A program made the translations under genes and the position numbers. A model generated the notes under the pieces. It worked only from the letters and a program-made list of their open reading frames with translations. It did no database searches and was not told the origin of the DNA. Shown one piece after another: positions 744-30,672 of a stretch of 64,000 nt of DNA. Origin of the DNA: Setoptus koraiensis. Its lineage: Eukaryota > Animalia > Arthropoda. The stretch's first letter is position 1. Each line of letters starts with the position of its first letter. Location of the stretch: contig CM106586.1 of assembly GCA_048013815.1 (NCBI GenBank), forward strand, positions 7,130,001-7,194,000. Direction: 5' to 3'.

Positions 744-2342
744 TGACTATTTTTAGCCTTGTTAAATGATGCTCTTTGACTGTATAATGTTAGGTCTACC
801 ATCAAAAATCTCATTCACTTGATGGTGGAAATTCTGACAGATCTCTCACTTTCCTCCCACTTTTTTCAAACTTACACACCCGCTTCCGAGACTGTGTTGG
901 AGATTTAAAAATAATAATAAATTGAAAATTAGTGATCAGGGGAGGTAAATCTCTAGCCTAAGCAATCTCTATCATAAAGCCGATTTTTACATGAAAATCG
1001 AACAGGTTTCGACGTTTAGTTTCCTCAATCAGTCGGTAATGTTTCTAATGAAAATACACAGGTTGAAAGAACACACAGTGAGAGTTTCTCACCAGGTCCC
1101 TAAAGAATTCAAAGTATTTCTACTCTTGAGCCATCACCTCTCCGCTGCATGGGTGGTGCGCTGCGCTTGCACCGGCCAACTTATCAAGGCCCTAGCTACA
1201 AAGCTCAAAATACCGTCATATTTTTCCTTCTATTATTCTACCTAATGGTGTAACAAGTTTCTGCTATGAAATTTATTGTGGCTCGTTTCAACAAAAATGG
1301 CATTTTTATTGACAGATTAGTGACAGTTTTACTTGAAAACTTTTCGAATCAGATAGAGCAACCAGACGAACAGTAGTTTACTGATTGCTGTTGATCTTTA
1401 AACAGATCGGTCTACGCTGTCATTCCTTGCATTCAGTAGGAAAACTAATTGATATATGTCAATTTGTTTCTACAAATGATGAACTGGCTACTGCGAGGAA
1501 GTCATTCCGCTGAGCAGTTATGACACTCTGCTAGGGTGTCATCGCCTATTCTGATCCTACTCCTCTTCAGAGGCCTCCACTGGGCCTATACACATCATCA
1601 TTAGGGCTAACCGAATTTTGTAATTACCGCTCTGTTAATAGTGAAGCGATTCACCTGGTTTTCGCACAGTCTACATTTCTGCCTACTTGGAGTTTTATAG
1701 GGCGATTATTTTGCCGAATTATCGTGTTTTGAGGTTTCACCGAAAAAAAATGGCAAGTGTCTAGCTTTGACTGCATTACTTCTGCGAACCCAGCGCCCCT
1801 GGCATCTTAATTCGATAGAAATTTTGCGAAAAAAACCGCCGATTTGGATAGGCCTAATTAAGCTGGTCCACTCTGTTGCCAGTCTTGATGTGCGTTCAAA
1901 AGCGACAGATACATGTGCGACTAAAAGAAATTCTCACTGAAGGCGGCCAAGTCGATCCAAAAGGACACTTGAGGCCCAAGAATAGAGCGCTATCAAGGAA
2001 CGAAAAAGAAGAAAATTTAACCTCTTGCCTACTCTGACAAGCCTTGTGAGCCACATTTCAGGGCGTGATTTCGTTTATTCTGCTAAATAACACTGCTCAA
2101 GTAGAAAATGAATATAAAAAATTAGATGTACGACTAGTACTCGAGTAGACTTTTGGCAATCTTGTGTGTATGTTTTGCGTCAACAAAATTGAGTGTAGAA
2201 AATTAACAACAATCGATATGTTTGTGATTTTTGCATTTGTCATGGATATGAAAGCCCGTATGGGTTGTGATAATGCGCCACTAAGAGGAGGCCCCGACTA
2301 GAGATTGAAGATCGGGTGGAGTGCGATCTAACGATCAACAAG

Positions 2343-5300
2343 TTATGAATGATCGAAATTTCTAATATACTCGAGGGCTGTTTGATAGCAAAACTGGTAT
2401 TGATCCTCAGTCTGTACCATGCCTGGCCTTTGAGTCCTCAAGGTCCTGACTGTTTCAAAGAGATCTAGAACATGCTCATTATTTAGCCTCTCGAGCATGA
2501 TGCTCAATGCTATAAATGCGCCAGTCCTAATAATTGATAAGAAAAGATGTCAGTTAATAATAACATAGCACATAAAGAGTAGAGTATAAACATAGATTTC
2601 ACTTGATCTCACTCACCTGCCCACTCCTGCGCTGCAATGAACTGTTATTGGACCTTCTAATCCGAATTTTCCTTTTGCAGTGTGAACATCCGAGATCAGT
2701 TTTATGAATGACTCTCCGGATTTCGGAACACCCTGAAGAAATAAAAATGATCAAAAAGACAAACGTTTAGTACAAATGAGACAAAACATCCAATATCATT
2801 CTGAAACAATAAATACACTGTACTTACTTGCTCCGGCCAATCCAACAAATGGAACTGTCTTATTATCCTAGGATGATAGCTATGATTGCGGCGATCAGTT
2901 ACAGTGAATTCTCTTAGAATATAATGCGGACTTGTCTCGTCATACTGACGGTTTAGGCTGATACAATAGGGGCCGTATTCACCAGATCTTTCTGCTGGCC
3001 AATACTGGGTACATTTTTCTCTACCCATTTCTTTCAATTTAGTGAGCATCACTATAATACTCGAGTTGTGTTCAACCAACATGCGCCAAAAATCTTCAAC
3101 TGTCTCAGGCAACGGACTCTGAGTTGCAATATAAGCGTTTCTTTGACGATATCCGTCTATAAAACTTGCATTTATGTAGTCCGAGCCTTCTCGACAACCT
3201 GTTGGTTCCAGACAGACACGGCTACTTTCGTAAGGCAATATGTTCATCAGTCTATTTTTATGCTTGTTAACAGGCAGATTGGCACTGATAAACTTCTGAG
3301 GACCGTTTCTGATCGATGCGAGGCGCTTGAACTCAACCTCGAGAGCAGTTGCAGCTTCACCAGGCACAGGTTGCATGAGATGCTGCAGATGGTCGTAAAG
3401 CCTTGCCTCAGGGACCTCAGTATTAGCCGCCAGAACAGCCTCCAACACGGCGTCATGTATAAACATGTATTGATCTTCTGTTTGAACTATGTAGTTCCTC
3501 TGAGCTCTCAAGCAAGTTACGTGACCATAAATGTCGATTGAGTTTTCATATTTGATACGCTCAATCATAGAATCAATAACTATATAGCAACCTGTTCTTC
3601 CAACACCAGCGGAGCATAAGACAATTAGTGGGCCTGCATTTGGTGGATTAGATATCTTAATCCTTCTGAGGAACATGAGGAAAGGTGTTGGATGGTCTGG
3701 AACGCCGTGATCTGGCCAAGCTGTATACTGGAATTGCTTCACCTCTCTGATTTCATTTGATTGTACGTGCTGAATTTTGAAAGTTCTTATACTGTAATAT
3801 GCCAATTCTTCGACCATGGAAACAGAGATAGTTATACCATGGTGGATTTCAGGTTCGCGGGTGGGCCAATATTGTACGCATTTAACTCTTCCGCGCTCTT
3901 CCAGCTGTGTCATCATGACTATAGTCCTCGATTTCTGCTCCCACACCATTCTCCAAAAGTCTCCAACCGTGTTCGGTAGTGGACCTTGAGTAGCAATGTA
4001 GGCGTCAGGCTTACGATAACCATCACAGAAGTTTGCATTGATGTAATCTGAACCTACAATATTGTCGATTGGTCGAAGCACTACCCTAGAATGGTCATAA
4101 GCCACAACATTTCCATATCTGTTCTTCGGCCGGTTGACATCAAGATTAGAATTTTCCCAGGTAAACTGTTGTCCGGGCTCGATTGATTCGTATTCCTGTT
4201 TCAGAGCATCATTAATTTTAAGTTCCTCTATGTGATTAACAAGCTCGCTCACTAAAACTGGTGGATGACTGACCATACCGGGAGATTGGTAGTTCATGCG
4301 TCGCAGCTCGACTGGATCGTTAGGTTGAATAGCGTATGAACTGCGATCGATGTGCATATCTGGCAATAACTTCATTGTTGTTTCATTGTAAACATGATTT
4401 GATTTGATTACCTGTTGCTTGCGTTTTAGTATTGACAATAAAACGAATATTAATAGTATCAATATCGCAATAACTACAATAGTCAAGAATATAACACCTG
4501 TTTTGCCTGAATTTTCATCAGAAGGTAGAACGTTGACAGTACTACTAGGCAGAGTCGGCATCAGGGGTTCTGACCAGGGACTAGAAGTGTAAAGAGAGTT
4601 GGTGGGTTCGTCAACTATGGCCTGAACGAAAACACGATAGCTTTGATCCGGCTGCAGAGGCTTGTTAGTAAAGTTGTCATAGGTTTCTCCATCCCCTAGC
4701 AAGAATTCCTTTCTCATCTTAAGCCTACTAATTTTTGCAGCGACATAAACACCTTGAGGCAAATTCCCAATAGATATGGCATCGGGGTCAGGAACAGGAA
4801 ATTCTATAGGCATATCGCTGGCGACAACAAAGACATAATAGAAGTTTATCGGGCCATATTCCTCGCTTGCTAGTGGCAGGGTGCAAGATTTAGGAGAGCT
4901 GCCTATTGAGGATCGACATTCAGGTTTAACTAATGGCTTAGGTGCTGCCATTAAAGTGGTAACGTAAAATTGCGATGGCGGTCGGAATGATTCGTTGGGG
5001 GGAATAGCTGTAATATTGAAGTGATATTTCGTGAACGGCATCAAATCTAGGAAAGTATAATCGTTGGTTGTTCTATCTAAAACAATGACTTGTTTAGGTA
5101 TGTTTAGGGTCTGAAGATTTCCTTCACTATCATGGAACTGTTTAAAGGCATCATAGCTGATATTATATCTAATGGGAATAAGCTTCATTGGAGGTTTCCA
5201 GACGAGAGACGCGGTATGTGTAGTCTTGCGATTGACCCTTAAGTCCATGGGTACATCTGTGGGCTGGGTAGTTGTAGAAACGATTTCCGATAATTTTCCA

Positions 5301-17462: not shown

Positions 17463-19170
17463 GATGATGTCCCCGTGTGAAGACCTCAGTGTGTCCAAGA
17501 TGTTTTTGGGATGATTGGTGTGATAAAATTCAATTGATCAATTGATAGTGATACTTCACCTAACTTCTGATCAAAACACTGGATTCGACACGGGATAAGG
17601 TGCAAAGGTCTACGTGATTATTGATTTGTGCTAAACTATTAGACTATTTTATGGGTTTATTGACTGATAATTGTTAGTTACATTCCTATATGACTTCTAA
17701 GTTGGTCAGTATGATGCGTTGTTGGTTTCGACAATAAAAATATCACAAGTGTCTCACAAATTTATGTCTTCGCATTACCATACTTTAGTTACAACTAATG
17801 ATCTTGTTTTTTTCATGTCTACAATTAATTTGATTTGTTGATGCAAATGTTTCTTCAGCGCACAACTGCGAATGATGCCCCTAAACCGTAATGATCCATC
17901 AATAATTTTCCATGTCAAATTGTTTTATTGTTTTAGCTGCACTCCACGTTTTGCTTGGTAAGTATGTTCACTTTCAATAAGGAGAACCTGTTGTTTTTCT
18001 TCGTCTGACAATAAATAATGCATATTCTATTGCTAGCTGTTGTGGATAAGAATCTTCGTTCACGATCAGGATCAAATCAAGACGCTTGTCAAACGGCTGC
18101 ATTAACTCTGGAAACTACAAACAAAACTGATTTTAACTAATTTGTTTCGCTGATACTTTGTTTGTTTGTTTCGATCTCAGAAACAATTTCCGACTAGAAT
18201 ACTAAGTGAGCCAAGTCGAATGATTCGTTGCATTAACTAGAGAGTGATGCTGAGTGATTCAATTCTTATCTTGAACAATATGTTATAACTAGGCAATATC
18301 CCAGTCTTGGTAGCGTTGAATGATACTCACACAGGTCCATTTGGTTTCGATGATGCTGTTGCCTGACACATGGCAGTTTTCAAATCTTTCATCTCAATAA
18401 ATGATGATTCCCTACCAATTAGAGAAAATTATGTCAATTAGGTTAACATTAAACGGAACTAAGTTGAACTAATTAGATCGTTGGAAGTGAGATGATTTTG
18501 TTTGTGCAAATTTGTGATCATCAGATAGTAGATAACAAGATAACACAAGAGACTTAGACCAACAGACAAAACTGGTTAAACATTCCGATTTTAATTCAAT
18601 TAAAGCCAAGCCGAGTCAAGCAATTACTAGTTGTTACTGAACATGCTTTCATGGTGTTACTACTCACACTTGTTATCTATCTGTATGTCAAACAATCTTT
18701 GCTATAATTTTCTTATTACACTTACCTGTGTCAATCAAATATCTTTAATAGGATCAATAATCTGGATGAGAGAATTTTTCACCTGTCGAAGCTAATCAAT
18801 GAGATCTTTCTATATTAAGACAAATTAATGGTGTGCGTTAAAAATTGAACTCTAATGTGACATACATCACAAGAATGAATAACTTTCGTTTGTTTGCTTG
18901 TTTTTGCTATACATCAAGCAACACCGGAAGTGTGGAATAAATATTATTATTGGAGCTTTAGGAGCCATACTGTCTGCGAGCAACACAACTATTTACCACC
19001 TCGTTCGCTTAGTTCGAGATTGCAAAAGAGATTATTCCAATGATTGGCCTGTTGATAGTCTATTTGCTGATTGCCATCCGTCATACATGTCAATGCTGTA
19101 TTTAAAACAACCAACTGTACCTATTGATAATGAGACAATATTAACAATGACTTGTGTGATATCCAAGCCC

Positions 19171-19274
19171 ACAGTTGGTTAAAGGGGACCAAATAAATCT
19201 GACAACGTAGCGATCCAGAGAAAGTGATTCATCTGAGCCCTACGTCAAAATTTAGTCCGATTCTAACCAACTGC
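19171..19274 (-). ncRNA. mir-133: microRNA mir-133 precursor (long hairpin, variant mature sequence)
   Basis: - strand 19192-19171 reads UUGGUCCCCUUUAACCAACUGU, 20/22 identical to canonical miR-133 (UUGGUCCCCUUCAACCAGCUGU) with an intact seed. The upstream 5' arm GCAGUUGGUUAGAAUCGGACUAAAU (19274-19250) pairs with it over ~22 positions. Confidence 0.85.
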
Positions 19275-22200
19275 GTATTAGACATCTCTCTTGCACGGTG
19301 CAATATTGACAGTCAATTATCTGTCTCGGATGGCATCGAGTTGAATGGGCTACAATGAAAGGGGTTTCTAACGGTGACCATGTATCACTGCAAAAAACTT
19401 GTTGCTTACTTGTTGTTTGCTAAAACGTTCTCTATGGGCGACTAATTTGATTTATATGCTATAAATGCAGTATATAGACAATATATTGTGGACTACTTAT
19501 ATGTTTATATTCTATCTACAGATTATTCACTTGGGGCAATACGTTTCCACTGCTCTATATTGACTGAATAAATGGACGACAAGATGACTGGATGATGCAA
19601 TGACTGAATGAAGTTGAGACAAGAAAAAAGTAAATAGAAATATTCTCTCTCAACAATGACTATCAACTGTAGGCAGTCAATAGATGATATATTATTAATA
19701 CATCTGAATAGTAGAGTTGCTCCCTCTTTCTCTCTATTTCTCTGAGTAAAGAGAGGGGGGTATACATAATTACAGAGCTTATTATGATAATAATAATAAC
19801 AATAATAGTGATAGAGGCGAGCTAAAGAGTTTTCTATTAGTTTTTATTAAGATAAAACAATCGGTTTTATCAGTTTGATTTTTCTCTCATTGGATAAAAC
19901 AGTGCAAACATACACACAAAAACACATCCACGAAAACAAACAGGGTTAGTAGCGGTAGTAATCACGATGGAAAATGTTCCGACTCTACAACTTCATCCTA
20001 GTGAGCTGATTTCCATCACAGTTGTATAGGTGTAGTAGAGCTACTACACTAATAAACTCAAGAGCCTCCGAGATGAAAGAGGAGTCATCAAAGGGGAAAG
20101 AATTAAAGATCACAAACATGGAATAAGAAAAAGATGATCTTGATTTTATAATTCGCATCTTGCTTAACTATCTATAACGTAGCTAGAACAGCTTGAACTA
20201 AGACTCTCATCTCAAGGATACTGCACACTTTACATATGCACATACTCTTTCCCTTGTTAGTGTGCTTATTCTTGAGGTACCTAGGTGTACAAAAACATAC
20301 AACCTCCTCTATGCCATAGTTTCCCCATGATTACTGTACTCTCTGCCTATCTATTATAATCATTTATTATTGTAACGCCGCCAAATTCTTCTGAATATCG
20401 CGCCTCTCTACACACATGTACACAGTTTAGTCCCCTTAATGTCTTGGCGCAATAGCGGAATGACATTAGCCCAATGACACAAGCTTTATATGTATTTTTG
20501 TTTAACTGTCAGCCCAAATCCTCTTCTCAGCTATATCTTTGGATTGCTCCTCCTCTGACAATTCTTGAATCACGATAATTCATTAATTCATGAAAACCTA
20601 GAATTTTCGCGCGTCTACAAAAGTTTCGCCATGCAGCAGTTAACAGGTTTACTAGGTATCTCGATACCTTCAATTAAGTATGATGAGCTTGTTGTTTAGG
20701 TTTTTAACCATTCTAATTGTATTGTACATATTCATACAAAACAATGAAAGAGTTGACATTTGGCTAAGGGTGATGAGTTGGGTGAACAACAAACAAAAAC
20801 ACAACAATTCTCTACGCCATATGAGAGATAACGACCAATATATGATGAAATGCTTTTTGTATGATGCAATACGAAGGAACAGTTCCTACAGTTTGTATTG
20901 GTAGGAAAAGTTAACTACTTTCAATATTAAAACAATATACAGCAGCATCAGACAATAATAATGAGAGCTCGGGGCATAAATGCATAAAGATGTCTGATCA
21001 GATGGTGAAATTCTTGCAGTTTGAATTTAAGAAGACGCCGTTCGTAAACTACCATACTACTTGACATTGTGTGTATGTGTGTGGCTTGGCGCTCTCTATT
21101 TGGAGATTTGCAAAATAATTATATAATAGCTTTCTCCATCGCTTCAAAACACCATTTTATGCATATGCACATTCGCATATGCTTACAAGAAGTCTGTTGT
21201 GTTGTGTTTTGCGTAGCATGGATACATGCTACAGATACATATTTCGAAGTGAGACTGGGAATATGCAGTGAATTGGCATAAGGCAAACAGACATGTTTGC
21301 GTATGTCAAGCTCTTCAAGACGATTCATACTTGGCTCATGTCAAGATAAAGCCCAAAGAGAACGAGAGAGATAATTAGTCCATGTCCTCTATAGTGCCAA
21401 GATGTTGATTGTGATGACGATGAAAAAGCCCATGTGGCGCCTAGCTCTTCCGCCTTAAAACTAAATGTAAATATATGTATGCATAATAGTAGGCGTAGCT
21501 AGACCGTATCTACTGTGTCTCTCAGAATTGGCTTAAATTTTATGATGCAGAAGAATAATGGTGATGGAAGCCAAGAATGTCTGTCATGTGGTGTTCGACT
21601 GGATGTGCACATAACGAATTTAATGTTGTTTGCTTGCTGTTGTATAGCGATAAGAGAAAGAGAGTTGTTTTGCATAGAGATAGTTCCATTTTAGGTGTAT
21701 TAAACTTTAGCGCAACTCCATTTGCTGGAGGGAGCCCTCACCTCCAGCGAACAAGCTTGCGGGCTTGCGGGCGAGCGAGCACAGCTGAACAAAAAGTTCC
21801 CAACAATTACAAATTTGGTTGTTGTTTGCAACCATCCTACTGGGCGCTGGTTGTGTTGATTTAGCTGGTTAGTAGATATAGAAAAACAAAAGATACCAAG
21901 TATTAGCGGCAGGGGCGGCGGCGACATGCGATTCTCGCTACATGTAGCTATCGGGCACACTTATGTAACTCTCGCAACACTCCTCGCGCTCTTGGATCTA
22001 GTCAACTCTTCCTGCTATAAAACCTGTCTCCCCCAGTATATTTGTCTTGTCCTCGTTTGATAGGCCTCAATTAAGGCATGCAGCTTTGTTTAATCTCTTG
22101 ACTGGGTGCACCATGTGAACCAGTTAGCGGTATGACAATGTCTATCACTCAGCTTGTCAGCTGTGCCATGTTGGCGTGGCCGGCGTCGTCAGTGTCGCCG

Positions 22201-23101
22201 ATGGTGTTGGCAGTGGCTAGGGCACATATGAGACAAGTGCTGCAGTTGTATGTTGTGAGTCAAATCTCATCGGAAGATGAATGGTCACCACACTTTGTGT
22301 GGAATAGACAAGAGAATGCATCAATAGACAGTATATTGTCCCCTAGTCGCTTTGTGTCGCTGCTCCCGAAGCACTACACTCACTGTGTGTAGGCGTTTGT
22401 GGCGTGTTGGTGCGATACCAGTTTGTATCTTTGAACTGTCTACCAGCATTGCCTATTGGCGGCCAGTCGAGAGATAAAGTAAGTTGGTCATGGATGGCAG
22501 TGGTGGCGATCTGTCTTGCAATCGTCCGTCGTCCCTTGATTCGTGTGTGCGATATGCAGCAACAGGCCCAGCCTCAGCGCATGCCGTCGCTCCGAAAATT
22601 GTTGTATATATCACTGGATATTATTGGACTGGATTGACATGATAAAATAGATTTATAAATGGTTCAAGCTAGCAGCGATTTTACGACTTGCATGCACAAG
22701 TTGATCATTTGAATATATACACATGATACGTGGTTGTTGTGTTACTTTCGCCATTGCCGCAGCGGGTAATTGGCCCGAGCGTCAGCCCCAGCCCGAAGCC
22801 CCAATTGCCGGTAACCAAAGACCCGCGCCCGAGCATTTGCCCGTTTTTACAATCGATTTGATTCGCTGCCTGTGGGCCTGAACGCTGTTACATGTGCACA
22901 CGCACTAGTCACTATAGCGCTGCTATTAGCAGTCTATCTGTTGGCACCGTGGCAAGCAGACGATAGAACATGTTGCGCGCAGATGGAGAGTGTAAGCGCG
23001 CGCTGCTGCTGCACTGACTGCGACGCTAGTGCAGTTACTGCTAGCAGCCAGTGACACTAGTTCGTTTGTGCCCATTCGGTCGCGTTGTGCGTCGGAGGTG
23101 C

Positions 23102-23399
23102 GCGCGGATATCCAACTGGATATCCGAACCGCCACCGACCCGCTCGGCACGCCCCAGTCCGAAGCGTATCCAGATCGCCAGAATGAATGGTTATCGGGTA
23201 TCCAAGAGTCTTTTTTTCCTGTGAGCCTCGAGCGTATACACCGAGTAGCGATCGCTCCGCAACACCAACACCGAGGCTGTTTTATCGCGAACCGCGCTCC
23301 CAATCCGCTCCGGATGTGGGCCGGATCGGACATGGAGCGCATTGGGCAGGGAGCGGGTCGGGCAGGGAGCGGATATCGGACGGGTATGGATATCCACGC
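23102..23399. mobile_element. ~300-bp foldback / MITE-like element with imperfect terminal inverted repeats
   Basis: Left GCGCGGATATCCA (23102-23114) vs right TGGATATCCACGC (23387-23399) is a 12/13 inverted match. Further inverted blocks GATATCCG and CCGACCCGCTC/GAGCGGGTCGG. TGC flanks both ends. No coding capacity evident. Confidence 0.45.
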
Positions 23400-25715
23400 T
23401 GCTGCGCATCGGCATGCGGCACAAATGCTGGCATAGGTGGCCGTTGTTGTGCGAGCGCGTGAGTAGTGGGCCTTTGAGCACACTCGCTGCATTTGTTAGC
23501 TCATTTGCACTGGCTGCGCGGCTTGTTAGTTCGACTGACTCAATCGGCGATCACGCGATCGAGTCGATTGATCCGGTCGATTGAGTCGATCGAATTACTT
23601 TTGTTCTCCGTTTGCCGGGCCGGGCCGAGCTCGCACTCGTCGCAGGGCGTCATCACTGTTCGAGTGTGTTTGTTTATGAACCCGCGCCACCGTCGTGTGT
23701 CAGCGTCATTCTAAGTGTGGCGTCAATAAATTCGACAACTGATACGGCAACAAGTAGTGCCGCTATTGCGCGCAACTCGTGCAAATGACGACTCCATGTG
23801 CACTCACCATTTTTATCCGATCACATTTGTCCGATTTCATCCAATTTTATAAAATTTTATCCAATTTCATCAGTGACCGAGCGACTGCCGCATTTATTCA
23901 AGATTCACCAATTTGGACACAACAAACCGGCCCCAACGTTGTCATGGTTGACGCGAATCGTGTTGCGACACACACACACACACACATTCGTCACAGCGAG
24001 CGCTGTTATGTGGCATAATGGACAGTGCAAGCGGAACAATAGAAACATAGAAATTATTCTTAATTTGGACAACAACAATCTAAACGCTAGCGCCTTGTGA
24101 GACGAATCTTCACTCACTCGAGTGTGATCGCAACTATCATGGCCAATCTAGCTAACCAAACGACGGCTTTGTGTGTCGAGTGTGTCAAGTGAGCAAGCGT
24201 GAGGACAAACTTTAATCGTGTGCATTGTTCCTCCGGCAAACAAATGATTCTCGCATCAAGAAACAACGTTCCTCTAAACAGGCATTCTTTATGCAAACAA
24301 GATCAGGGTAATTATCATCTCATTTTTGGCAACTGTAATATCAATACAAATGATAATTCCTGCTCACTCTCTCTCACTCTCTCTCTCTCTCCCTCTCCAT
24401 CTCTGACTCCCTCTTGCAGCCAGATATCGCAGATCGCACAATGGTGTGTGCCAGACGGGACAGATAGGCAGATAAAACAAAACGACGACGAAATGATTAT
24501 AAAACGCAGCAATATATAAATTAGGCAACATGCAACAGATGACGAACACACAGCCTGACATCCCTTGTGGGTGCCACATAACAGGGCCAGCGCTGTAGTC
24601 GTCTATTCCTTCCACCATGATCACTGGATCGGTAAACTCCAACGTAAGCCGAGTAGGGATATATAATCTTGAGGAATGGGAATGAGCAAAGCATGGGGAA
24701 GCGGCTCGGGGGGGGGGAGGCGCGAGACATCGGGTAAGCAACAACAAGAGAGCGATATAAATAGCAGCGACAGGCAAATATAGGATGATGTAGCAAGTGA
24801 AGTGATGCGGTACTCTCACAAAAGAACAACATCAACATCTCGTCTCATCGCTTACTCTCTTAAGTTCGAAAGTCATAGAGTCCTTCCTTTTGAGCCATCT
24901 CTGAGCTAAATTAGCACCACTAATATCAATATTTAACGCTAGTACCATCGCCACACCATACTAGACAAATGTTGAACACCACATACAAAACTAACAACTA
25001 TTATTGTAGTGAGCTATCGCCGTATGTGATATGATCCCACTCACTTTCTTCGTCCCATCATCCCACAACTTTCATTCTGTCGTCTCACAATCATCATCTT
25101 CGCCGTGATCATCTTTGTTTTTGGCTGCCCTCTCTCTCTTTCTCTTACTTACACACTCATCACAACCATATCATCAAGCGTACATGGTATTTACAGTCAT
25201 GTTGCTGGAGATAATCTGCAAAGACAACGAGGCTACTGTTGTACGCATCAAGCATCAACTACGAATCGTCGAATGATCGTCAGTTCAGTTTCATACTCTA
25301 CATTGGCATCAACGCGTAACGTTACATCACATACTACATGAATGAGGAGACTTATCTAACACCCAGAAACAGTCGCACATATTTTATCCATCACAGTCTT
25401 AGTTAGTCTATAGAAACGCCCTAAAACTCAACTTCTTCGACATAGTAAGATAGCAGCGGGCACCCATAGCGGCGTTGCTTAGTTTTCGACCGAGTGAGAC
25501 CAAACAACAAAAGTGTCATTATAACTTTAGTCGCCGATACGAGCAGACATATATTCATCTAATCATTAGTTCTGACTCAGGAAATTGATCATTTTAATAT
25601 TGGATCAACAATAACATTCGTCGAAAAAAAAAGTGATTTAATTGGACGACATCTAAACAATCAACAGTAATCACCATTCATTCTGCACATTACATGAGAT
25701 AATTTCCACATTTGA

Positions 25716-25785
25716 TTCCATGAATCTTTGCAATTCCATATGCTTTTAAGTGATGATATTATGGAATGTAAAGAAGTATGGAGTG
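25716..25785 (+). ncRNA. mir-1: microRNA mir-1 precursor, copy 1
   Basis: Mature TGGAATGTAAAGAAGTATGGAG at 25762-25783 is identical to protostome miR-1-3p. The 5' arm CCATGAATCTTTGCAATTCCATA pairs with it. Confidence 0.95.
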
Positions 25786-25828
25786 AGAGAGGAAAAACGA
25801 CTACGCGCTTCTATCATATCCATATCTG

Positions 25829-25895
25829 ATTCCATAATTCTTTGCACTTCCATATGGGACAAATTCTATCTATGGAATGTAAAGAAGTATGGAGT
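25829..25895 (+). ncRNA. mir-1: microRNA mir-1 precursor, copy 2
   Basis: Mature TGGAATGTAAAGAAGTATGGAG at 25873-25894; 5' arm CCATAATTCTTTGCACTTCCATA. Confidence 0.95.
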
Positions 25896-25967
25896 AAGGT
25901 AGGATTTACCGTCGACTGATCAATCTGCATCAACAATTATAATTATCATAATAAATATCTTAATTCA

Positions 25968-26030
25968 GGCCATATTTCTATGCAGTTCCATATACAATTG
26001 ATATTTATGGAATGTAAAGAAGTATGGAGT
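25968..26030 (+). ncRNA. mir-1: microRNA mir-1 precursor, copy 3
   Basis: Mature TGGAATGTAAAGAAGTATGGAG at 26008-26029; 5' arm CCATATTTCTATGCAGTTCCATA. Confidence 0.95.
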
Positions 26031-26301
26031 GAATAAGGATTGCAACTCCGAGTTATTAAGTAAGCAAATATCCATAAAATTATTATAGGTAATACGTGCC
26101 AGAAAAGTTCCAGTTACCGTGCTACTTTGTAGAAATCGTGTCTTCTATTATCAAAAAATATTTATTTCCTGTTTGGATTAAATAATTTCAAATAAAATTT
26201 TACTCTGGGTGATAACAAGTTCAAAATCATCAAGTTTGTTATTGCTACATAATATATTTAATCGCGACTTATGGCGAAAAGGCTAATTCATCATATAAAA
26301 T

Positions 26302-26949
26302 TTAAGCTGCATCATCGGGGTAAATGACCCTCCGCTGTTTCTTATTTTTGCCCATATTTGACAATCCTATTCTCAGAGGTGGCCTTCGTTTACGGTTTGT
26401 TTCACCGATAGTGGGTCCAATGTACCCTCTGATCGGCATCGAGACTTCCTCCAGATTGTTCCTAATGAACTGCTTCTTCCTCAATTCTTTGTACAATTCA
26501 AGGTCTTCATCTTGAAGATCGGTTTGGGTTTGAGCATCTTTAACTTCAACCACAGCTTGAATTTCGCGATCTTTGGATTGAGCCTTGCCGATAAAACATG
26601 TGCTAGATACCTCGAAATTCACTTTCTTGGGAGCCGTTTCCGTCTTTTGGTTTCTTGGTTGAGGACATAGAAAGATATGTGCTTTAAGAGCATTGTCCAC
26701 CTGTGGTTTCTCCTGCACTGGTCCATTTTTTACTAGTTCTTCCTTGACTGATTCATCCTTTTCTAGTTCAACCTCGACTAATTCATCCTTTACTAATTCC
26801 TCTTTTGCTGAATTGTTCTTCACTGGTTTGATATTCTCACTATTTTTGCAGTTTCTATTTTGTCTCCTCCGAGGTGGATCTGAACGAAAATTTTGCATAA
26901 TATCTTCAGGAATCTGTGAGAATTCAAATACGTCTTCCTGTGTAGACAT
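26302..26949 (-). CDS. Uncharacterised charged protein, 215 aa, with KDAQTQT motif
   Basis: ATG-initiated 215-codon ORF in AT-rich DNA. K/E-rich, with (K)(E/D)ELV pentapeptide repeats, KDAQTQT and a basic RKRRPP stretch. Confidence 0.65.
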   Translation of the reverse strand: MSTQEDVFEFSQIPEDIMQNFRSDPPRRRQNRNCKNSENIKPVKNNSAKEELVKDELVEVELEKDESVKEELVKNGPVQEKPQVDNALKAHIFLCPQPRNQKTETAPKKVNFEVSSTCFIGKAQSKDREIQAVVEVKDAQTQTDLQDEDLELYKELRKKQFIRNNLEEVSMPIRGYIGPTIGETNRKRRPPLRIGLSNMGKNKKQRRVIYPDDAA

Positions 26950-27478: not shown

Positions 27479-29500
27479 ATGGATCATCAGACGATCAAAA
27501 ACAACATTGATAATTGTATTGCCAGTTCGGTGTCAACCATCAATCAGTCAAGATCATCATTGAAAACACGCGATTCGGCCCTTCACACTCTGAGATCATG
27601 CCTGGCGAAATTGAAATTGAACACATTTATTATCAAGGAACTAAGCCCGAGTAAGAGAATGTCCATCATAGAATGTTTATGTGATGTCTATGCAAATAAA
27701 CAACGGACCCAGTTGGATTTTGATTGTCTTCTAATGTGCCTCAAGGTGCTCCCAAATGACTGTAGCGTCATGAGAGGAAAAATATTTCAACATCTGCAAG
27801 TGCATGCCAATCACGCCAATAGAAATCAAGCATTTAATCCACTGGTCACCGTCATCGCCGACTGCATGGCTCGCTTATATACTCTGGTGAAAAAAGGTGT
27901 CTCACACAATGGCAAAAGTCTCGACACTTGCTCACAAGAAGCATGGAAAGAAGGTATGGCGGCACAATTGACAACTATAGAGCGAAATGTTGATTTAATA
28001 AGTAGCATCTGCAACATTGCATCATCAAAAGTGATAAGACGAGACGAATCCAATAATGCAAGCGGTGATTTTCATAATCCAAAAGTTAGCATCAGTAACG
28101 ATAATCAATCCTATGATATTAAAATCATGGGCTACATTCGAAACATTGATTTTGCTTCTCACGTAATCTGCTCGCTGATATTAATTGGTGTTAGATTCGA
28201 AAAGCCCATTCCAATTACTGTCATTTTGAGAGTATTCGAAAGACTTTCGAATATACGGTGGAGAAGTTATCCCAAGAAACCTCATGGTCAAGATAAGCAA
28301 CTTATCTATAGCCATTCTGTAAGCTTTGTCAGGTTACATTTGATGATTTTGCACGCTCTCTTCAGAGCTTGCGACAGCAATCTTATAAGATACACAGTTT
28401 CTATCAATTCCAGCGTCCTTGGTATGCTCGAATGGACCAGGATCAGCCTTTCGAAGACACTAGAAAAGGCATCTTTAATCGATCTCCGTTGCGCGATCTA
28501 TCAATTTGTTGAAGCGATGCTTGGAACGCTCTTTCTGAATGTCAACTTGGAACAAACTCAACTTGAAAAACTCATATTCACAGAAATTCTCCAAGACTCA
28601 CGACCGAATTTCATTGATGAATACCCCATACAGGACCTCAACGACAAATCTTCAAGATGCTCTGCATATGAATCATATGCAAATACCGCGTTGGCTAAAT
28701 TGACCACTAAGAGTCTCAGCTGCCTCAACAAATTGGTTGTTGTTTATAAAGGCTTCTTAGATCCAGGTTTAGACATCAAAATCAAGCGCTTCGCGATTGT
28801 AACTTGCTTGGATATTTACAGGGAGTTCGATGACATTCAATATCCTTACGATATCTCACACTGCCGCCTCGAACTCATCAAACTTTTGACATCTCTTGCC
28901 AATGAACCATGCAGTACTTCCACATCAGAGATTGTTGACTTCATTCTTGAGCAAGCAATAAGATTTGATCCAGATAGTGAGATAGGCTTCACGTGTCAGG
29001 CGTCTCTGAAGAACAGTCTTACACGTCCAGTTCTTGTCTCTCACCATGACGCGTACACCATCTTTGGGCGACATATGGACCTGGAACAGCAGCTAGACCA
29101 GCTTGAGCAGATTGGAGAAACAAAAGGAAACGACGAAAGAGGTGCGCATGAAAGAGAAGAAGATAAGGATGGAGAGCAAGAAGTACTGATGGAAGGAGAA
29201 GAACAAGAAAAAGTAGAGAGGGAAGCCGAGGAGAAGGAAAAACAGGAAGCAAAGGGAGAAAGAGAAAAAGTGGCAGAGAGAGAACCAGAGGATAAGGGAG
29301 AAGAGGAAGCAAAGAAGAAGGTAGAGGAGAAAGCAAAGGAGATTGAAAACACAAAAGAAGACGTAATACATCTAGATGATAGTGATGCGGAAGTTGAACA
29401 AATGATGCAAGATTTTGTTGATACCGAAAACAAATCTATGGAAAACTTTTTTGATAGTGAGCAAATTATGCAAGACTTTGTTGTTGATACTGTGGACTGA
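27479..29500 (+). CDS. PELP1: PELP1/Rix1-like protein (60S biogenesis), 673 aa, single exon
   Basis: Helical N-terminal domain. PIPITVILRVFERLS and YPYDISHCRLELIKLLTSL...DSEIGFTCQASL resemble PELP1 core motifs as recalled. Glu-rich tail ends in VIHLDDSD and MMQDFVD. Confidence 0.72.
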   Translation: MDHQTIKNNIDNCIASSVSTINQSRSSLKTRDSALHTLRSCLAKLKLNTFIIKELSPSKRMSIIECLCDVYANKQRTQLDFDCLLMCLKVLPNDCSVMRGKIFQHLQVHANHANRNQAFNPLVTVIADCMARLYTLVKKGVSHNGKSLDTCSQEAWKEGMAAQLTTIERNVDLISSICNIASSKVIRRDESNNASGDFHNPKVSISNDNQSYDIKIMGYIRNIDFASHVICSLILIGVRFEKPIPITVILRVFERLSNIRWRSYPKKPHGQDKQLIYSHSVSFVRLHLMILHALFRACDSNLIRYTVSINSSVLGMLEWTRISLSKTLEKASLIDLRCAIYQFVEAMLGTLFLNVNLEQTQLEKLIFTEILQDSRPNFIDEYPIQDLNDKSSRCSAYESYANTALAKLTTKSLSCLNKLVVVYKGFLDPGLDIKIKRFAIVTCLDIYREFDDIQYPYDISHCRLELIKLLTSLANEPCSTSTSEIVDFILEQAIRFDPDSEIGFTCQASLKNSLTRPVLVSHHDAYTIFGRHMDLEQQLDQLEQIGETKGNDERGAHEREEDKDGEQEVLMEGEEQEKVEREAEEKEKQEAKGEREKVAEREPEDKGEEEAKKKVEEKAKEIENTKEDVIHLDDSDAEVEQMMQDFVDTENKSMENFFDSEQIMQDFVVDTVD

Positions 29501-29534: not shown

Positions 29535-30672
29535 TTATTCACTTTTGAGACGTTTTTCGACTGGCATCGATCCTTCTAATCTTGGTCCATATGTGTGAAG
29601 ACTGAGTGTACCTAACCATTGTAGCATAGATTTTTCTTTTAATTCAGCTTCGACTACTACAGGGTATATATGTTCGTTCTTAAAGTTATCAATCTTATCT
29701 GAGACTGACTCCCACTTTATAGGATCGTGGTGACCATCTCCACCAAATCTCTTATTATACCTGTCGAAATGTGTTTCTTCTAACATAAGGCCTACACCTG
29801 GTGCTTTTGGTATATCCATCCTGTCAGATTCGAAGGACTTTTTGATATGCTCTTCGCTAGCAAAGCCCTTCATTACCGCGATCGCTAAACCGATCATTTT
29901 TCTAATCTGATGCATCATGAATGACTGACCTTTGACACGAATAATCACGAATTCTAAATCGTCTTGATTACATGGATAGAATGGATCGCTACACTCCATC
30001 ATGTGAATTCGTCGAACAACACTTGGATCGTTCGGCTTCTTTCCGGATGTAAAGTTGTGGAAGCAGTGATTTCCGACATATCCACCGAGAATATTATTGA
30101 ATTGTTTAATAATTAGCTCACCAGCCTTAAATTTCTCTGTGGTTAGTTCTTCTGGAGGAGCTAGTGCAAATGACGGCATCAGATATGAGTAGGTTCTAGC
30201 ATCACAATAGTTTTTGGAACAAAATGCTTGTGTCACACGTCTGACACCCATAACTCTTATGTCTTTGGGTAATTTTTCATTCAAATCCTCGATTTTTTCT
30301 GGTAGAGTTTCTCTAACTTTCATAGAGCAAATTTGCCTTATCGCAGATACACTTTTGTCTGTTCTGGCGGCCCTCTGAAAATGGTATTCCTGAGGCTTAT
30401 GGAATTGTTCTTCTGAAATAATTTCACAGTCCCGAAGGGCTTCCATAAGTGGTTCTTCTACAGTCTTTGTGCCTGGATTTCTGTTGGGATAAGGAATCTA
30501 ATTCATTTATGTTAACATATTGGATATCTAATCTTATAAGTTTACTTTTATACGAAATTACAGCTAGAACAAAGAAATCTGGTACTCACCTCTGCATTCC
30601 AAAGTAATTTTTGCCGCAATAACTCAATAGCATACAAAACTTGCGAGTCTTTATTCTCTTCACACCACTCAT
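29535..30672 (-). CDS. PUS1: tRNA pseudouridine synthase 1 (TruA family)
   Basis: Exon 30672-30590 (MSGVKRIKTRKFCMLLSYCGKNYFGMQR), intron 30589-30481, exon 30480-29535. Motifs FQRAARTDKSVSA, CDARTYSYLMP, GNHCFHNFTSG, KGQSFMMHQIRKMIG and IPKAPGVGLMLE. Further N-terminal sequence is possible. Confidence 0.92.

Follow-up and report, generated by a model that had tools for sequence, protein, structure and literature searches.

Three head-to-tail mir-1 hairpins with an identical mature arm and conserved structure in a mite genome assigned to the eriophyoids

The 64,000-nt stretch of DNA analysed here (the window) very likely carries three functional, paralogous mir-1 genes, which are arranged head to tail, would have originated by tandem duplication, appear to be kept by purifying selection and are likely to be read in one transcript. 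Few animal microRNAs are as conserved as mir-1, of which a mir-1/mir-133 locus normally holds one copy. The evidence for the triplet comes from exact matches to the mature sequence, from the folding of each copy, and above all from the comparison of the array with its counterpart in a related species, where the differences are concentrated outside the hairpins.

Results

The mir-1 array

The 22-nt miR-1 sequence TGGAATGTAAAGAAGTATGGAG, which we take to match the arthropod-type miR-1 of Drosophila, is present in three exact copies on the + strand, with mature starts 111 and 135 nt apart. The full hairpins including their basal stems occupy 25703-26040, slightly beyond the interval 25716-26030 first annotated, so that the head-to-tail array lies within 340 nt. 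Its parts are as follows:

25703-25795, + strand: mir-1 hairpin A (star arm 25718-25740, bulge A at 25733, mature 25762-25783)
25796-25817, + strand: spacer A-B, 22 nt
25818-25905, + strand: mir-1 hairpin B (star arm 25832-25854, bulge C at 25847, mature 25873-25894)
25906-25956, + strand: spacer B-C, 51 nt
25957-26040, + strand: mir-1 hairpin C (star arm 25970-25992, bulge G at 25985, mature 26008-26029)

According to shuffled sequences, the expected number of chance matches to the 22-mer TGGAATGTAAAGAAGTATGGAG is 0, even at 3 mismatches. The three array sites were the only matches at up to 2 mismatches in a pattern search of the 48.76-Mb genome (2 contigs), and the Rfam mir-1 search of the whole genome likewise returned these three sites only. 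Matches to mir-1 on the minus strand were rejected as genes, being weaker mirror images of the + strand hairpins.

The mature sequence, with the seed GGAAUGU, is located on the 3' arm in all three hairpins. Folded alone as 101-nt units, hairpins A, B and C reached -31.7, -37.6 and -32.2 kcal/mol, with z-scores of -5.9, -5.8 and -5.8, respectively, and in each case none of 200 shuffles was as stable; the same three hairpins formed when a 391-nt RNA spanning the array was folded as one molecule. Every copy thus displays the stable hairpin of about 60-80 nt and the extended basal stem suited to Microprocessor that are expected of a precursor. Scored against the Rfam mir-1 model (RF00103; gathering score 45.6 bits), hairpin B obtained 59.5 bits, above the gathering score, whereas hairpins A (44.4 bits, E 2e-7 in a 2-kb search) and C (41.2 bits, E 1e-6 in a 2-kb search) fell just under it, owing to loop length and a few non-canonical pairs and not to the mature arm.

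In the 5' arm, a one-base bulge is found at the same place in all copies, directly after GCA, occupied by A, C and G in hairpins A, B and C, respectively. The star arms begin with CCAUGAAU in A, CCAUAAUU in B and CCAUAUUU in C. Of the paralogues, B comes closest to a canonical mir-1 hairpin and C has diverged furthest. The first-pass annotation had described three mir-1 hairpins starting 111 and 135 nt apart around an invariant 22-nt mature, a single-nucleotide bulge at one position carrying A, C or G, and star arms differing between copies; the exact matches, the folds and the star-arm starts all agree with this description. The term "unalignable" that it also used is appropriate for the loops, which are mutually unrelated, but not for the 5' arm and basal stem, which are 84% identical between A and B over 37 nt, with C at 65-68% identity to either.

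Host and neighbouring genes

Protein matches and the small genome together place the host among the eriophyoid mites (gall or rust mites). The best named match of the pseudouridine synthase encoded at 29535-30446 is from Aceria tosichella (66% identity), followed by Tetranychus urticae (53%) and by oribatid and astigmatid mites (50-54%); many unnamed matches at 60-67% come from plant sequencing runs. The window contains long intron-free ORFs, and the genome, which had been described as streamlined from the window, is indeed small (48.8 Mb in 2 contigs).

Two further ORFs are neighbours of the array. For the one at 27479-29500 (+ strand), which encodes 673 aa and lacks Pfam domains, a search of 1.8 billion proteins gave only 23 representative homologues, none above 34% identity; it appears to belong to a fast-evolving, lineage-restricted family. 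The other, at 26302-26949 (- strand), encodes a Lys/Glu-rich protein of 215 aa, its 3' end converging on the putative mir-1 transcript.

Conservation of the array in a related species

The 215-aa neighbour gene has a single homologue in the protein collection (57% identity), through which a 4.1-kb Logan contig, L043 (run SRR33593474), was reached. The same run also gave a pseudouridine synthase 90% identical to that of the window; compared with this value, the 57% of the 215-aa protein indicates that the latter evolves very fast. On L043, miR-1 likewise occurs as three exact copies, with strand and order matching those of the window and spacings of 112 and 115 nt. Identities between the window and L043 were distributed as follows:

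5' flank: 100/131 identical
Hairpin A: 91/93 identical, both substitutions in the terminal loop
A-B spacer: 16/22 identical
Hairpin B: 87/88 identical
B-C spacer: 21/31 aligned bases identical, plus a 20-nt indel
Hairpin C: 78/84 identical
3' flank: 185/247 identical

In this single pairwise comparison with the one close relative recovered, the pooled hairpins were identical at 256 of 265 positions (96.6%) and the spacers and flanks at 322 of 431 (74.7%; Fisher p = 5e-16), and the difference persisted when the mature arms were removed from the hairpins (190/199; p = 1.5e-11). The divergence of the A-B spacer is consistent with neutral drift.

The nine hairpin substitutions comprise five in terminal loops, the bulge base of C, one change from G-C to G-U, and one double change. 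Besides two loop bases, the differences in hairpin C are the bulge base at 25985, G in the window and A in L043, with the bulge itself kept; position 25966, where a G-C pair becomes G-U in L043 and pairing is kept; and 25962 (A>C) together with 26035 (A>G), which turn an A.A mismatch into a C-G pair in L043. Hairpin A additionally has a single-base indel at 25792, in its 3' basal region. All the hairpin differences either fall in a loop or bulge, or leave a pair kept or created. The orthologous hairpins of L043 fold alike, C being more stable there, and A and C have z-scores below -5.6 in both species.

This pattern argues for selection on the structure of each hairpin, as predicted, and is unlike that of a decaying copy; it supports the view that all three copies are real and under purifying selection on structure. 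The earlier proposal of an old duplication under such selection is thus borne out by hairpins at 93-99% identity within surroundings at about 75% and interrupted by indels.

Further signs of structural constraint were found in an alignment of eight hairpins, where the duplex pairs are invariant or changed to wobble only, while four basal-stem pairs have changed on both sides with pairing kept. The basal stems are unlike between paralogues, yet still paired. A CNNC motif, which has a role in Microprocessor recognition, starts 14-17 nt past the 3' end of the mature in each of the hairpins A, B and C, in the window as in L043; CNNC occurs in the window at a background frequency of 0.20 per site.

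Putative transcript and flanking elements

Two conserved elements bracket the array:

25140-25555, no strand assigned: conserved upstream block, putative promoter or enhancer, with TATAA at 25520-25524
26191-26196, + strand: AATAAA, candidate polyadenylation signal of the mir-1 transcript, 151 nt past the base of hairpin C and conserved in L043

The upstream block (about 400 nt) is 85-100% identical to L043 in 40-nt windows, except for 25392-25474, where identity is 50-78% and L043 has a 17-nt insertion. It includes a run of 65 identical bases, compared with about 75% identity in nearby neutral sequence, and identity drops to 50-58% after 25555. The TATAA at 25520 and GATA motifs at 25209 and 25352 are conserved in L043. 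No RNA-fold signal was detected on either strand of the block, and a further structured RNA was rejected here, the Rfam matches to mir-57 and snoR117 being at chance level. MEF2, CArG and E-box motifs were absent from the 600 nt upstream, both in the window and as motifs conserved in L043; muscle-specific control of the array is consequently assumed by analogy with mir-1 in other animals, the motifs of this region giving it no support.

No ORF was found between the hairpins, whose bases are separated by gaps of 22 and 51 nt on the same strand. From these short gaps, together with the conserved TATAA and AATAAA, we infer a single short primary transcript containing all three hairpins, with a dosage effect. 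A convergent AATAAA on the - strand (26161-26166), 25 nt from the candidate signal of mir-1, would serve the 215-aa gene.

Distribution of mir-1 copies

Public metagenome contigs were scanned for the 22-mer, yielding 34 loci that form about 18 groups by hairpin sequence. A single mir-1 copy was present within the contig DNA examined at 31 of the 34 loci, and the approximately 16 other arthropod-type sequence groups had one copy each within the contig DNA examined, in agreement with the initial statement that mir-1 is usually single-copy. In most groups the star arms are of insect type and the contigs bear serially repeated names; as a guess, these groups could stem from gut or nest metagenomes of social insects.

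Two of the loci, L016 and L027, represent the same GC-rich sequence in two samples and contain two exact copies 122 nt apart, both of which fold; no third copy was found within 5.4 kb downstream in L027. L016 also contains an intron-free gene for a RhoGEF/WD40 protein of 1356 aa, which has a counterpart with 65% identity in the present genome. Since this is the same level as the Aceria match, the source of L016 is very probably another eriophyoid. A third locus, L005, carries a mir-1 hairpin at 1285-1515 (- strand), with about 140 nt of structured sequence inserted apically between its star and mature arms (z -5.4); such "giant hairpins" are known from invertebrates (PMC12553114). About 320 nt upstream of it, at 1600-1710 (- strand), lies a decayed relic of mir-1, its mature altered at two positions and its hairpin gone (z +0.8).

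The 5' arm and basal sequence of hairpin B are 81-84% identical to those of the downstream copy of L016 (copy 2) and of the L005 hairpin. Because both share this sequence, B is probably the ancestral-type copy. The pairing of A or C with the upstream copy of L016 was attempted and dropped, the arms being too short and too constrained to decide.

Neither mir-1 nor mir-133 was present on five other eriophyoid contigs carrying the pseudouridine synthase (L038-L042), of which the closest stops 0.8 kb short and the others have different neighbours. mir-1 was also absent from two contigs with homologues of the 673-aa neighbour (L044 and L045). Within the genome itself, Rfam searches returned one locus each for mir-133, mir-9 (C2:4923537) and mir-124 (C2:22842384), and a genome-wide multiplication of microRNAs was rejected, all three being single. 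A heuristic Rfam search of the genome gave no locus for let-7, being too heuristic for this result to mean absence.

The mir-133 partner and the age of the duplication

The partner gene of mir-1 is also present in the window:

19166-19279, - strand: mir-133 (Rfam mir-133, 32.7 bits, sole match in the genome)

It is oriented divergently from mir-1, on the other strand and at a distance of about 6.4 kb, and so cannot share a primary transcript with it. The same divergent arrangement is found in L016 (mir-133 at 3395, + strand; 2.7 kb) and L005 (7576, + strand; about 6 kb), while locus L006 has the canonical order, with mir-1 and then mir-133 on the same strand, 1.85 kb apart, and an unchanged miR-133. 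The mature miR-133 of the window has two mismatches to the canonical sequence, G18A and C12U; G18A is common to the window, L016 and L005, and C12U is a further change in the window. On these sequences, a divergent mir-133 bearing G18A looks like a clade marker.

The shared G18A, the divergent mir-133 and the retention of three copies, two, or one plus a relic suggest that the window, L016 and L005 form a clade with an early mir-1 duplication, which would therefore be old and specific to this eriophyoid-like clade.

The gap of 6.4 kb between mir-133 and mir-1 is gene-free and long for so compact a genome. Within it, 22000-24000 is GC-rich (52% against about 39% around it) and contains short tandem repeats; the short ORFs of this segment have no Pfam matches.

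Discussion

Interpretation of the array

The array would have grown by local tandem duplication, long ago, of a unit about 110-135 nt in length, with B of the ancestral type, A a B-like duplicate and C the most diverged copy. Each would act as a Drosha/Dicer-type hairpin, releasing the same 22-nt miR-1 from its 3' arm. Selection would keep the mature arm, its pairing partner, the bulge, the basal stem and the downstream CNNC, and would let loops and spacers drift. One primary transcript of about 650 nt could span the interval between a TATA-type promoter near 25520-25550 and the AATAAA at 26191; cropped at three sites, it may yield as much as three times the miR-1 from each transcription event, presumably in muscle.

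That selection acts on more than dosage was considered, as the three 5' arms differ in their seed regions (the seeds would be CAUGAAU, CAUAAUU and CAUAUUU) and the window and L043 differ in these arms by nothing but the bulge base of C. Sub- or neofunctionalisation of the star arms would imply that three 5' arm products are loaded into Argonaute and address different targets. Strong dominance of the 3' arm is the rule for miR-1 in the animals studied, which speaks against such products, and the conservation of the 5' arms is already accounted for by their having to pair with a mature arm that does not vary, so that it gives no independent support. Although arm switching after duplication is reported to be common among chelicerate microRNA paralogues (PMC4987109), we regard this explanation as unlikely. 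A related proposal, to which we likewise attach a low probability, is that three seed-distinct 5' arm microRNAs serve as eriophyoid-specific regulators, or that the multiplication offsets altered export or processing, Exportin-5 and Staufen being reported missing in Aculops lycopersici (PMC7738191). In the former case, the most conserved muscle microRNA would have served as the scaffold for this new set of regulators.

It would also be conceivable that B is the sole working gene and that A and/or C are decaying duplicates still able to fold, given that both score just below the Rfam gathering threshold and that the decayed upstream copy of L005 demonstrates paralogue loss within the clade. That relic, however, has lost its hairpin and acquired two changes in the mature, unlike A and C, which match their orthologues at 91/93 and 78/84 positions amid surroundings at about 75% identity with indels, retain z-scores below -5.6 in both species, and differ only by changes that spare or improve pairing; decay of A or C is accordingly judged improbable. 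An assembly artefact, with one locus or its haplotypes stacked into a false tandem array, was considered since tandem near-repeats can mis-assemble, and nothing was found in its favour. The arms, loops and flanks are not the same in the three units, and the independent assembly of a second species has the same three units in the same order, which leaves this possibility next to negligible. Three functional mir-1 genes kept by purifying selection are thus the preferred reading of the array.

Comparison with known systems

The window resembles Drosophila mir-1 and the RF00103 and MIR-1 families in having the mature on the 3' arm and a bulge or internal loop placed as in the Rfam consensus. It differs in having three hairpins, the non-eriophyoid arthropod-type loci of the sample having one each. 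With respect to the ancient bicistronic mir-1/mir-133 cluster (PMC1388199), which in Ciona forms a compact bicistronic precursor (cited in PMC6589888), mir-1 and mir-133 of the window are still neighbours at about 6.4 kb; unlike in that cluster, the window, L016 and L005 have the two genes on opposite strands in divergent orientation, and in the window mir-1 is multiplied whereas mir-133 is single.

Tandem duplication of hairpins is a standard route of microRNA cluster growth (PMC4238352; PMC4987109). As in other tandemly duplicated families, the array would reflect local duplication of a hairpin unit within one transcription unit, with divergence of loops and spacers. Matures usually diversify in those families, whereas three identical matures are found here, and in a gene, mir-1, that is normally single per locus. 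The vertebrate paralogues mir-1-1, mir-1-2 and mir-206 similarly provide several mir-1 family genes per genome, raising or partitioning miR-1, but they lie on separate chromosomes, each with its own mir-133, as a product of whole-genome duplication (PMC1388199), and form no head-to-tail array.

Among eriophyoids, miR-1 is recorded as present in the Aculops lycopersici genome paper, with no copy number in its text (PMC7738191), and MirGeneDB 3.0 includes Tetranychus and no eriophyoid. No published tandem mir-1 array in mites was found in the open-access literature searched, which is not proof of novelty. The array is an unusual variant of ordinary microRNA gene duplication, in which a microRNA that is deeply conserved and normally single is maintained as a tandem triplet, specifically in an eriophyoid clade.

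Significance

The array reveals no new mechanism. It provides a clean natural case in which hairpin architecture (bulge, basal stem and CNNC) is selected, with loops, spacers and the identity of the bulge base left to drift. The number of copies, the divergent mir-133 and G18A could be used as characters for the phylogenetics of eriophyoid-like lineages and for sorting metagenome contigs. For the animals themselves, mir-1 has been triplicated and kept, next to a flipped and single mir-133, in a lineage known for extreme genome reduction, which raises the question of what use a larger yield of miR-1 per transcript would be to a minute animal whose musculature is reduced.
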